From positions 23,498,001 through 23,562,000 of the forward strand of contig NC_088807.1 of the NCBI RefSeq assembly GCF_011386835.1: 64,000 nucleotides of DNA, in the 5' to 3' direction. Every line of letters starts with the position of its first letter. Position 1 is the first letter of the stretch. The stretch is from Chrysemys picta bellii. Its lineage: Eukaryota. The notes beneath the pieces are model-generated. The model ran no database searches. It was not told the DNA's origin and worked only from the letters and a program-made list of their open reading frames with translations. The translations under genes were made by a program, and so were the position numbers. This document shows, one piece after another, positions 45,780 to 56,708 of this stretch.

Positions 45780-47727
45780 TCAAAGGTAGTTCCCCCCGGG
45801 GAGGTTAGCTGGGGATAGACACTCCAGCCTTGGTGGGCTCGGCTTGGGCTGCTCGGAGCCGGTGGGCCCTGGGGTCTTGTGCCCAGGGGGGGTCTGTGAG
45901 GCAGGGAGGGGGGGCTGCGGTGGGGGGCAGGGCCAGGGCGGGGCCTGGGCTGGCTGCGGGGGGGCCGGGAACTTGTTCTCGTCCGTCTCGTAAAGGAACC
46001 AGTCATAGGAACCCTTTGGGCTGTCCAGGTGCAGAGCTGGGGGAAGGAGACAAAAGTCAGTGATGGAACCCAGGCGTCCTGGCTCCCAACCCCCCCACCC
46101 TCTAACCACTAGACCCCACTCCCCTCCCAGAGCTGGGGAGAGAACCCAGGCGTCCGGGCTCCCAACCACTAGCCCCCACTCCCCTCCCAGAGAGGGGGAG
46201 AGAACCCAGGCGTCCTGGCTCCCAACCCCCCCCCCGAAACCACTAGCCTCCCCTCCCCTCGCCAGGGAGAGAACCCAGGCGTCCAGACCCCGCTCACCGA
46301 GGTCTTCGAGGGACCCGTCCTGCAGGCGCCGGTGCGCAAAGGACGACCCCCGAGCCCCCCGGCGGTAGGCGCAGTAGATCCCAGAGAAGAGGCAAAGCAG
46401 GAGGCCGGAGGCCAAGAGGAAAAGGCCCATGGCCTGGGCCCCCCCGGCCCCCTGGTGCTCGGCCGGCCGGCCTGCGGGGGGAGGGGGAGAGCGGTGAGAT
46501 GGGACCCAGGCGTCCGGCTTGCCGCCCCTCCCTTCTGCTTCTTCCCCCCGGATCCCCTCGCCAAGCACTGCCCCAGTCACTCTGCACTATACCAATGCAG
46601 TCACTCCCTTTCTGCCCCCCACAGCGCCCCTCTCTGCACCCCACCTCCGCATGCCCCCCTTTCTGCACCCCACAGCGCCCCTCTCTGCACCCCACCTCCG
46701 CATGCCCCCCTTTCTGCACCCCACAGCTCCCCTTCTGCACCCCACCTGCCCCATGCACCCCCTTTCTGCCCCTCACAGTGCCCCTCTCTGCACCCCACCT
46801 CCCCATGCCCCCCTTTCTGCCCCCCACAGCTCCCCTTCTGCACCCCACCTGCCCCATGCACCCCCTTTCTGCCCCCCACAGCTCCCCTTCTGCACCCCAC
46901 CTGCCCCATGCATCCCCTTTCTGCCCCCCACAGCGCCCCTCTCTGCACCCCACCTCCCCATGCCCCCCTTTCTGCCCCCCACAGCTCCCCTTCTGCACCC
47001 CACCTGCCCCATGCACCCCCTTTCTGCCCCCCACAGTGCCCCTCTCTGCACTCCACCTCCCCATGCACCCCCCTTCTGCACCCCACCTGCCCCATGCACC
47101 ACCCTTCTGCACCCCCACTCTCCTTGTGCAGCCTGTCCTCCTGCACCCCCATGCCTCACCCTGCACCCCCTTTTACATCCCTAAGCGCATGGCCCACCTC
47201 CACACTCCTTCCCCGCCCTTAAATGCACCATGAACCCCCCGTTCCTACCCCCACCCTAGCCCCCAACTCCTTGCCCATGCGCCCCCATTCCCTCAACCCC
47301 TGCCCCCCCATACACCCTCTTTACCTCTTTGCTCCACCCGCTCCACCAGCAGAACCATCTCGACCCCCCGGTGCCCCAGCGCCCCCTGCCGGCCGGAATC
47401 TCCTGCCGCAGCCCCGGGGGGCCTCTGGGGGGCACCGTCACCTGGGGTCCGCTGGCTCAGCGTTGCCGTGGGGTGGGCCAGGCTGCTGGGGGGCAGGGAG
47501 GGGCTGGGGGGAGCAGAGCGCGGACCCGTGGGGCTACGGGAGGTGGGGGCAGAGGGGGACTCGGGGGACCATCCGGTGTCAGGAGAGGGGGGAGGGCTGG
47601 GAGGGGAGGGGGGGGCCCTGTCAGCCAGGGGGGAGGGGTGGGGCCAAGGGGCAGAGGGGGACGGGGGCTGGGGGGCACCGGCAGCGAGACAAGCCCCGAG
47701 GGCCAGCAGGGCAGCCGGCAACAGCAT
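45780..47727 (-). CDS. GFY: Golgi-associated olfactory signaling regulator (Goofy) orthologue, 277 aa, 3 coding exons
   Basis: Exons 47727-47325, 46471-46298, 46036-45780 join in frame; signal peptide, Pro/Ser-rich region, GVEMVLLVERVE, transmembrane segment, FAHRRLQD, LHLDSPKGSYDWFLY, RLECLSPANLP match recalled mammalian GFY blocks; AATAAA at 45547-45542; oriented away from PTH2. Confidence 0.82.
46610..47110. repeat. C-rich intronic minisatellite
   Basis: Repeated ccccacagcgcccctctctgcaccccacct and variants. Confidence 0.85.
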
Positions 47728-47809
47728 CACCCGGCGCTGGGTGTCTCTGGGAACCAGCACCTGCGAGGGGTGAGAAGGGGTTAAATTGGGGTGTCGGCCC
47801 CCCGCCTCC

Positions 47810-48180
47810 CACTGCTGAGCGCCCGCTGCTGACCCCCCGCCCCACTCCCCACTGCTCAGCGCCCCCCGCTGGCCCCCCGCCCCGCTCCCCACTGCTCAGC
47901 GCCCCCCGCTGACCCCCCGCCCCGCTCCCCACTGCTCAGCGCCCCCTGTTGGCCCCCCATCCCGCTTCCCAGAGCTCAGCGCCCCCTGCTGCCCCCCCCG
48001 CTCCCCACTGCTCAGCGCCCCCTGCTGCCCCCCCCGCTCCCCACTGCTCAGAGCCCCCTGCTGCCCCCACCGCTCCCCAGACCCCAGCGCCCCCTCCTGG
48101 CCCCCTGCCCTGCACCCCAGAGCTCAGCGCCCCCTGCTGGCCCCTTGCTTACCCCCTAACGCCCCCTAGCACCATCCTGG
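47810..48180 (-). repeat. minisatellite with reverse-orientation CTCF-like motifs
   Basis: Repeated CTCAGCGCCCCCTGCTG; the copy near 48123-48140 reads GCCAGCAGGGGGCGCTGAG on the minus strand. Confidence 0.7.
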
Positions 48181-52200: not shown

Positions 52201-52434
52201 GATCACTTCAGAATTGCCCCAAACCAGGCACCCCACAGGAGCCTGGGGGCCGGACAGCCTGTGGGGCCGGCCCAGCACGGCGGTTTCTGCTCCTTTCCGG
52301 CACGCTGGACAGATAGACGGACACCGGGAGGTAGAAAGCCAAGTATTTATTGATGCAGTGACAGGGAGTCCATGCGATACGCGAGGGGGGGTCGTCCCCC
52401 CCAGCAGAGGCGGCATCTCTCTGGTCACCAGGGG

Positions 52435-53957
52435 TCAGCGGCGCCCCAGGACCAGGGCCAACCCCATGGCAGCGAGCAGCAGCAGGAGGGGAGACGCTCA
52501 GCAGCACGGTGACGATCACCCTGCCCCCGAGCGCCCGCCGGGGCCGGGCTCCATGGCGCGGAAGCTGCGGGGGAGACCTGGGGGGAAAGCCGCAGGGGCA
52601 AAGAGGCGGGGCTTAGTCCTGCCATGCAGGGGGAGGGGCGTGGCCAGACTAAGCCACATCTCCAGATCTGGCAGCCGGCGCCCCCTGGAGGGGGAAAGGC
52701 CCAGTGTCCCATTCCCTCCGCGCCCCCCCCAAACCAGTCTCACCTCTCGTCTCAAAGGGTCGAGACCAATTCGTCAGTGTCACCGGGGTCACGGCTCGGC
52801 CGTACAGAGCAAACCGCACCCTGCAGAAAGCAAGGCAGCTGGTGCTTATGAAGAGGGAGGGAACCCAGGAGTCCGGGCTCACGACCCTCCCCCCGCCCCC
52901 GGGCTCTAACCGCTAGACCCACTCCCTTCCAGGAGAGAGAACCCAGAGTCCTGGCTCCCAGCCCGCCTGCTCTAACCACTAGACCCCACTCCCATTCCTC
53001 ACCCCCACAATCTCAGCCAGCCCCAGATACTCCTATATGCTCCCCACACCCTGCACCCCAGAGATTCAACCCTCCCAGGCAGCACCCCAGGCTCCCCCTC
53101 CCTGCACCCCCCCCCCACACTACCTGTAGCTCCGGCCAGGGAGCAGGTCCCGGGTGCAGGTGTCGTTCAAGCAGGCCAGGCCCGGCCCCACGTCATAGGC
53201 AAATTCCCGCGGGAGGGGGGGCTCCTCAAACAGGGGGCTGCAGGGGGGCACCAGGAAGCCCTGGGGCACCTTGTAGGTGGCATTGTCCCCTGGGGACAGA
53301 CAGCAACATGGAGTAACAGCCCAGGAATCCAGGAGTCCTGGCTCCCAGCACTAACCACTAGACCCCACTCCCCTCCCCAAGCCAGGGAGAGAACCCAGGA
53401 ATCCTGGCTCCCAGCCCCCTCCCCCTGCTCTAACCAGAAGACCCCACTCCCCTCCCCATACCTGAAGGCTGTACGTGCACCTGGATCGTGGCCGATGCCC
53501 GGGGTGCCTGGCTGGGGTCCACGCTCACCTGGCGCCATCGCTCGTAGAGGCAGTACGCAGGGCGCAGGCGCAGAATGGTGGAGAGGCGAGAGGATTCGGA
53601 GTACAGCCTCACAGGGTAATCTGGGGGGCAGGATGGGGGGAGGGGGGCAAAGTGAGAGCCTGCCCAGAGCAGCCCAACTCCTCCCCAAGCCAGGGAGAGA
53701 ACCCAGGAGTCCTGGCTCCCAGCCCCCTCCCCCACGAACCACTAGACCCCACTTCCCTCCCAGAGTGGGAGAAAGAACCCAGGAGTCCTGGACAGGGCTC
53801 AGCTGTGGCCAGTCCCTCCTCTCTGCCCCCAGCTGCACGGGGAGGGGCCAGGGTGCTGGGGGGGGCCCCAGGCCAACTCACCCAGGGGAGGCAGCGAGAC
53901 AGCCCCCAGACTCAGCCAGAGGAGAAGGAAAAGGGGCCCCAAACACTGGCTCGCCAT
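52435..53957 (-). CDS. uroplakin-2/3 family membrane protein, UPK2-like architecture, about 206 aa if two 1-bp indels are corrected
   Basis: Exons 53957-53882, 53620-53462, 53289-53124, 52820-52744, 52577-52435 (phases 1,1,2,1); signal peptide, GFLVPPC, YRVRFALY, TNWSRPFET, GGRSG, VIVTVLLSV, LLLLLAAMGLALVLGRR*; AATAAA at 52351-52346; as written, a TGA at 52518-52516 precedes the transmembrane segment. Confidence 0.75.
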
Positions 53958-56378: not shown

Positions 56379-56708
56379 AGGCTGTGGATGCGGGATGCCC
56401 CACAGGACCCCGCCGACCCCGGCGAACGCCCCCTGGCTTGGGACCTGCAGCTGCCGTCCATCACCCTGCAGGACTGGAGCCTCCGGATGCTGTCCGGAGA
56501 GGGGCGAAGCAGGAAGTCCCGCCTCTGGAGCGGGCCAAGCCAGGAAGTCCCGCCTGCGGAGCTGGCCCCGGGCTGGGGCGGGAAGAGGAGCATCGTGGTG
56601 GCGGACGACGCGGCTTTCCGGGAGCGGAGCAAGATGCTGACGGCCATGGAGCGCCAGAAATGGCTCAACTCCTACATGCAGAAACTGCTGGTGGTGAACC
56701 CCGACTGA
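56101..56708 (+). CDS. PTH2: parathyroid hormone 2 (TIP39) precursor, about 146 aa
   Basis: KR then the 39-mer SIVVADDAAFRERSKMLTAMERQKWLNSYMQKLLVVNPD (56589-56705); coding exons 56101-56212 and 56381-56708; the ATG is one base out of frame with the signal peptide VTFLLGCCLLLCSG; AATAAA at 56760-56765. Confidence 0.92.

Follow-up and report, generated by a model that had tools for sequence, protein, structure and literature searches.

Uroplakins are textbook tetraspanin partners, present in bladder plaques and in the sperm receptor of the Xenopus egg. The history of the UPK2/3 family has so far been drawn with six lineages. Members are marked by intron phases 1,1,2,1(,2) and four conserved cysteines (C1 to C4), and UPK2a and UPK2b are without the last, tail-coding exon (Chicote et al. 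2017, PMC5242461). In UPK2a (mammalian UPK2; 8jj5 chain B) a furin motif, R-G-R-R, stands right after C2, and the C3-C4 pair is lost. UPK3a and UPK3b (8jj5 chain C) have four cysteines in an ectodomain that is not cleaved, the juxtamembrane motifs WS..T and G-R-R-S-G-G, and a further exon after a phase 2 intron, with a cytoplasmic tail of about 50 residues. Tetrapod UPK2b is a non-mammalian, tail-less form with four cysteines in reptiles (DeSalle 2014; Chicote 2017, PMC5242461). DeSalle et al. 2014 (PMC3922775) print its Pelodiscus and alligator sequences in their supplement, and the contig numbers adjoin those of UPK3a.

A uroplakin-2-like gene is found on the minus strand, at 52435-53957, of a stretch of 64,000 nucleotides of painted turtle (Chrysemys picta bellii) DNA, referred to here as the window, in whose coordinates all positions are given. 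The lineage to which it belongs combines the tail-less build of UPK2 with the four-cysteine and, by prediction, uncleaved ectodomain of UPK3. Taken together, the evidence makes it very probable that this protein-coding member of the UPK2/3 (tetraspanin-associated uroplakin) family is intact and transcribed, and that it is the turtle counterpart, by orthology, of a gene old in jawed vertebrates and located in the PTH2-GFY block; the most likely source of its two frame breaks in the window is error in the assembly. No major change to known biology is involved. The family is known and the gene is already annotated, as XP_023968875.1 (RefSeq 'uroplakin-2-like [Chrysemys picta bellii]', 206 aa, not flagged low quality; P0043 below).

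Minus-strand reading and exon-by-exon translation gave five exons, separated by introns that are all GT..AG and have phases 1,1,2,1. This bears out the structure, including a 76-bp first exon, that an earlier note had read from the same DNA. The coding part of exon 1 (53957-53882, 76 bp) starts with the ATG at 53957, encodes a hydrophobic signal peptide and ends in phase 1; 25/25 of its residues are identical to P0043. Its 5'UTR extends to at least 54085, a spliced contig of run X15 covering 54085-53882. Exon 2 (53620-53462, 159 bp, phase 1 to 1) is translated as DYPVRLYSESSRLST...PAYC, which contains C1. Exon 3 (53289-53124, 166 bp, phase 1 to 2) is translated as DNATYKVPQGFLVPPC...ACLNDTC...SY and carries an N-glycosylation sequon (NAT), VPPC (C2) and ACLNDTC (C3 and C4), without a furin motif. 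Exon 4 (52820-52744, 77 bp, phase 2 to 1; YRVRF...TNWSRPFETR) is translated as VRFALYGRAVTPVTLTNWSRPFETR. Exon 5 (52577-52435) gives LPRSFRAMEPGPGGRSG, with the juxtamembrane motif GGRSG, and then the hydrophobic transmembrane helix and LGRR before the stop TGA at 52437-52435. This stop lies about 5 residues past the helix, within exon 5, and no tail exon follows. Thus, the motifs VPPC, WSRPFET and GGRSG reported previously are all present, and no R-x-[KR]-R follows VPPC.

About 84 nt past the stop there is a candidate polyadenylation signal on the same strand (AATAAA, 52351-52346), recognised by its letters. A contig of run X17 (depth 2.5), placed on 52250-52511, passes this signal and continues to about 59 nt beyond 52250, which a longer 3'UTR, unprocessed RNA, or DNA in X17 could explain. 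At the other end of the gene, a TATA-like ATTTAAAT at 54077-54070 was considered as a promoter mark and dropped, as the presumed RNA contig begins upstream of it.

P0043 matches every exon of the window gene (98% overall). Four residues, in exons 2-3, differ from the window, and P0043 would therefore come from another assembly, individual or close relative. Its four lumenal cysteines are residues 49, 95, 118 and 123, the sequons of the protein are N81, N120 and N151, and the helices of its AlphaFold2 (AF2) model span residues 7-16 and 176-204. At residue 179, where the second helix starts, P0043 and P0046 (painted turtle and Mauremys) have an arginine for the methionine of most members (GGM to GGR). 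The codon of this residue adjoins the first of the two frame breaks in the window.

Evidence of transcription comes from run X15, in which a 594-nt contig aligns to 54085-53882, 53620-53461, 53288-53123 and 52819-52758, that is, to exons 1-4 joined at the predicted junctions, entering exon 4 at 52819 and running to 52758, with one to three differing letters per exon piece. The splice support of this contig covers the exon 1-4 junctions and does not extend across the exon 4-5 junction. X15, labelled 'organism B', is presumed (guessed) to be RNA, and a processed DNA copy could in principle give the same contig. For Chelonia mydas, dN/dS came to 0.30 when codons were compared one exon at a time and the counts added up; for a crocodilian contig it was 0.24.

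Taken as they stand, the letters of the window interrupt the reading frame of exon 5 at two places. The spliced frame reads ...GGRSGAG and then meets TGA at 52518-52516, the helix opens with VIVTVLLSV in the +1 frame, and its end (LLLLLAAMGLALVLGRR, followed by the stop) is back in the spliced frame. A transmembrane segment ending in LGRR-stop with no tail, as described in the earlier note, is therefore obtained with two frame changes in exon 5, whereas the window's own spliced frame stops after GGRSGAG. The note had itself pointed to both indels and proposed resequencing of 52480-52535. Alignment of the window DNA with that of the green turtle (Chelonia) and a crocodilian places the first break at 52524-52528 (minus strand), where the coding strand has five consecutive G and both relatives have six; the outcome is GGRSGAG and then TGA. 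The second is placed at 52488-52491 (minus strand), where the coding strand has four consecutive C, one more than in the relatives, and it compensates the first.

Both breaks are most likely, with high confidence, run-length errors of the assembly and not real mutations, judging from the sequences compared. The alternative that both indels are real in this animal, leaving a young pseudogene or a truncated, secreted ectodomain ending ...GGRSGAG, is what the window says if its letters are taken as given, and the mRNA would then escape nonsense-mediated decay because the premature stop is in the last exon. Against this, the two changes are 31 nt apart, both in single-base runs, and compensate exactly; one letter at 52488 is absent from the X3 contig (depth about 80) and from that of X17; and the RefSeq painted turtle protein is intact, reading through exon 5 as ...GGRSGGRVIVTVLLSVSLLLLLAAMGLALVLGRR, which is the window text with six G and one C fewer. 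Among the indels listed for these contigs, break 2 (52488) is the one directly contradicted; X3 also spans break 1, which is judged from the relatives and P0043. The runs also differ slightly from the window, so they may be from other individuals or close relatives; the best contains just 70% of the window's words, and no data set has been shown to be from the sequenced individual. In the 3' flank, at least four more paired differences in run length set both X3 and X17 apart from the window (-1 at 52284, +C at 52296, -1 at 52385, +C at 52395). Over 633 nt, the X3 contig differs from the window by 12 gap letters and 6 substitutions, and gaps that are twice as frequent as substitutions favour assembly error over divergence. 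With exons 1-4 also clean and dN/dS low, real indels are unlikely. The lesson for annotation from the assembly-error reading is that the gene is intact despite the frame breaks of the window.

Among those listed, the single-base run-length differences in 52250-52882 are at 52284, 52296, 52385, 52395, 52488, 52690 and 52719 (two independent runs). Other apparent frameshifts in this GC-rich window may likewise be assembly errors.

The turtle gene is established as a member of the UPK2/3 family by domain, sequence, structure, profile and language-model comparisons. The window was searched as single exons, and full-length analyses used database proteins (P0043 and other orthologues). A profile search, which the earlier note had proposed as a check, gives a match with Pfam PF07353 (Uroplakin_II), at 22.3 bits for P0043, a marginal match given the gathering score of 20.4 bits. 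Higher scores were seen for Chelonia (26.8), the caecilian Rhinatrema (47), the paddlefish Polyodon (40.3) and the lungfish Protopterus (55.4); the squamate orthologues (15-17 bits) and that of a crocodile do not reach the cut-off. Single exons of the window gave no Pfam matches, and exon 3 gave none against PDB sequences. A word-indexed protein search with exon 3 also returned nothing, as expected from the length rule of that search. An exhaustive HMMER search with the same exon returned 13 proteins, of which eleven are convincing relatives. With the database protein P0002 as query, a search of PDB sequences recovered porcine UPK2 (8jj5_B) at 2.3e-9 and UPK3A (8jj5_C) at 0.014. For the AF2 model of P0043 (pLDDT 77.8), Foldseek ranks 8jj5_B (E 3.4e-5) first and 8jj5_C (E 4.7e-5) second, with ordinary FN3 domains next. 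The predicted fold is thus FN3-like, as are those of UPK2 and UPK3A in the solved uroplakin complex. The nearest neighbours in a protein language model are the UPK3b, UPK3a and UPK3L clusters.

The gene also has the intron phases (1,1,2,1) and the architecture of the family: behind a signal peptide comes one lumenal domain carrying C1-C4, and the C-terminal end has a single helix with the G-G-M-V/I-V-I-T motif. In the window this helix is split over two frames. In profile comparisons with hhalign, this lineage matches UPK2a at 99.1% (1.7e-18) and UPK3b at 98.0% (2.6e-13), as against 77.9% (1.8e-5) between UPK2a and UPK3b themselves. In a phenetic sense, then, the turtle gene does sit between UPK2 and UPK3, in line with the intermediate position proposed for it previously. 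The lumenal part had been described as UPK3-like, and this agrees with its UPK3-typical features: all four cysteines are retained, as are the motifs WS..TR and G-R-S-G.

Protein searches recovered orthologues in turtles (Chelonia, Dermochelys, other sea turtles, Mauremys, Emydura and Pelodiscus) and squamates (Pogona, Anolis, Sphaerodactylus, Hemicordylus and Phrynocephalus), as well as in crocodilians, caecilians, frogs, a lungfish, a paddlefish and the whale shark. The gene had been thought lineage-restricted, which does not hold with orthologues spread as widely as turtles and the whale shark. In these searches mammals, birds and teleosts gave no orthologue; true absence is least certain for birds, where GC-rich regions are often missing from assemblies. 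On these sequence comparisons, the turtle gene would be the orthologue of an old jawed-vertebrate gene that is absent from mammals. In databases the orthologues are named 'uroplakin-2-like', 'uroplakin-3a-like' or 'uncharacterized', or are fused to 'Golgi-associated olfactory signaling regulator', and a literature look-up by their LOC identifiers gave no match. The second cysteine pair (C3 and C4) is kept by the members from sauropsids, lungfish, paddlefish and shark and has been lost from those of caecilians and frogs. All 20 orthologues, wherever the transmembrane motif could be located, end 4-7 residues past the helix.

The position of the gene between GFY and PTH2, which the earlier note had recognised, is confirmed by both neighbours in the window. 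Upstream and head to head with it is the coding ORF of PTH2 (TIP39) on the plus strand (56388-56705; Pfam TIP39, 94 bits, E 4.8e-27). Downstream, on the same strand as the uroplakin-2-like gene, GFY is represented by its two final coding exons (46388-46302 and 46040-45783), which tblastn located with the GFY portions of the fused models P0015 and P0014, and the uroplakin-2-like gene is about 4.5 kb upstream of GFY. An ORF at 47293-47892 (minus strand) begins like a signal peptide and has a long Pro/Ser-rich stretch; by its composition it is probably the mucin-like exon that opens the GFY coding sequence.

Where the surroundings of an orthologue were visible, it adjoins PTH2, GFY or both. The same gene order (PTH2, uroplakin-2-like, GFY) is found in Chelonia, and in Xenopus TIP39 is upstream of the orthologue and head to head with it. 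In lizards and a caecilian, several database models are fused to GFY (P0003, P0004, P0005, P0014, P0015 and P0021; Geotrypetes, Hemicordylus and Phrynocephalus), which implies that GFY is directly downstream in these animals. These models join exons 1-4 of the uroplakin-like gene to GFY, so that the name 'Golgi-associated olfactory signaling regulator' hides a uroplakin-like gene. The fusions reflect either read-through transcription or mis-annotation, and in several RefSeq models they are probably artefacts. In the whale shark (L004, 20775-27174), the orthologue is followed by a glycogen synthase gene (GYS1-type).

Human PTH2, GFY and GYS1 are in 19q13.33, and human UPK2 is in 11q23.3. The whale shark neighbour fits a 19q13.33-like block older than bony vertebrates. 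The 19q13.33 and 11q23.3 regions have many paralogue pairs in common, and it is therefore a reasonable inference, by analogy with these pairs, that the turtle gene may be an ohnologue of UPK2a. The GC-rich block from FLT3LG to GAL2 has several genes that mammals lack, a further point for annotation.

Of the described members, UPK2a is similar to the turtle gene in having the same exon plan, no tail exon, a near-identical transmembrane motif and the Uroplakin_II domain. The stop within exon 5 upholds the previous reading that a cytoplasmic-tail exon is missing as in UPK2. However, the turtle gene has no furin site and four cysteines, the reverse of UPK2a. The lack of a furin-type site, which had been given as a difference from UPK2a, is consistent across the lineage: R-x-[KR]-R occurs in 0/20 of its members and, directly after C2, in 6/7 UPK2a. 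The neighbourhoods also differ, as mammalian UPK2a models are fused with FOXR1 and the turtle gene is linked to GFY and PTH2. Additionally, crocodilians have a typical UPK2a with RGRR (P0098, P0100) besides a copy of this gene (P0023).

UPK3a and UPK3b share with the turtle gene the four cysteines, the WS..T and G-R-R-S-G-G juxtamembrane motifs and the uncleaved ectodomain, which for the turtle protein is a prediction; UPK3A (8jj5_C) also has the highest Foldseek TM-score normalised to the query (0.48). UPK3 identity was rejected, as the gene has no fifth (phase 2) intron and no tail exon.

Published tetrapod UPK2b is comparable in being tail-less, and in reptiles in having four cysteines, but by reading alone it is a different sequence (…FFPN…IVNIPKC…GYQVG…GPFCNQ…YRVNFF…GRAGGMIVIT). 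Pelodiscus has a separate orthologue of the turtle gene (P0024) besides its published UPK2b, and Xenopus has both types. Plain orthology of the turtle gene to mammalian UPK2 (UPK2a), or to the published tetrapod UPK2b, is very unlikely. The NCBI name 'uroplakin-2-like', the best PDB sequence match (to UPK2) and the tail-less end shared with UPK2a and UPK2b would all suit such an orthology. The coexistence of this gene with UPK2a in crocodilians, the opposite cysteine and furin states and the FOXR1 fusions argue against the first form of it, and the quite different Pelodiscus and alligator UPK2b, from contigs adjoining UPK3a, together with the presence of both types in Pelodiscus and Xenopus, argue against the second.

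A closer counterpart is 'UPK2b.Shark' from Callorhinchus milii (JK941564, JK956747, AAVX01097325; DeSalle et al. 2014, PMC3922775), in which the order of motifs is, by eye, the same as in the turtle gene and in whale shark P0019. The common motifs are DY..., SRLATLVWL.PA.CLFE.W, EDNATF, VP.C, the C3/C4 pair, RVRY, KWS...ATR and PRSGAMVVIT, and this protein also ends shortly past the helix. Although it is grouped with tetrapod UPK2b in the literature, its sequence looks like that of a chimaera orthologue in the lineage of the turtle gene. The designation 'UPK2b-like' in the earlier note applies only to the elephant-shark sequence labelled UPK2b by DeSalle et al. 2014, and fails for the published tetrapod UPK2b, a different protein encoded near UPK3a. 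A preprint on a zebrafish 'uroplakin-2-like' gene was found to have no bearing on the turtle gene.

A tree was built from this lineage with UPK2a and UPK3b as the only outside groups, because the family-profile search was dominated by mammalian UPK2a and returned no tetrapod UPK2b or UPK3a/c/d. In this tree the outside groups have very long branches (2.3 and 3.8) and attach weakly inside the short-branched lineage. Monophyly of the lineage is not rejected (log-likelihood difference 1.78, p-AU 0.29).

It is an evenly balanced proposal that the PTH2/GFY-linked gene represents a seventh UPK2/3 lineage, unrecognised in tetrapods, that dates from the base of the jawed vertebrates. In this proposal it may be the ohnologue of UPK2a on the 19q13.33-type paralogon; the ancestral state would persist in its four cysteines, its uncleaved ectodomain and its short branches, and the gene would have been lost in mammals and perhaps in birds and teleosts. 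The lineage appears to be unrecognised in tetrapods in the uroplakin literature, with its shark member apparently filed under UPK2b. If the proposal is true, the published class 'UPK2b' mixes two genes, shark UPK2b belonging to this lineage and tetrapod UPK2b being a UPK3a-linked copy, which is a reason to re-examine the class using synteny. The turtle gene would then add to the six lineages one that is widely kept outside mammals. Because of its combined UPK2 and UPK3 features and slow evolution, the lineage would be a useful stand-in for the ancestral form.

The product is a 206-residue type I membrane glycoprotein of the secretory pathway with a signal peptide, one long FN3-like lumenal domain with two cysteine pairs (likely disulfides) and three N-glycosylation sequons, the family transmembrane helix (G-G-x-V-I-V-T-V-L-L-S) and essentially no cytoplasmic tail. 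By analogy with the family, it would pair in the ER with a UPK1-type tetraspanin, which it would need in order to leave the ER, and would be transported to the apical or plasma membrane. As there is no furin site, it would be expected to stay uncleaved, as UPK3 does and unlike UPK2a. Lacking a tail, it could signal only through its partner.

Introns 1, 2 and 3 of the turtle gene each contain one copy of a very high-copy, tRNA-like SINE (…GGGGTCTAGTGGTTAGAGC…GGGAGCCAGGACTCCTGGGTTC…), at 53658-53785, 53338-53465 and 52890-53017, respectively. Over these copies the contig depth rises by three to five orders of magnitude, and hundreds of false 'joints' are seen among the reads.
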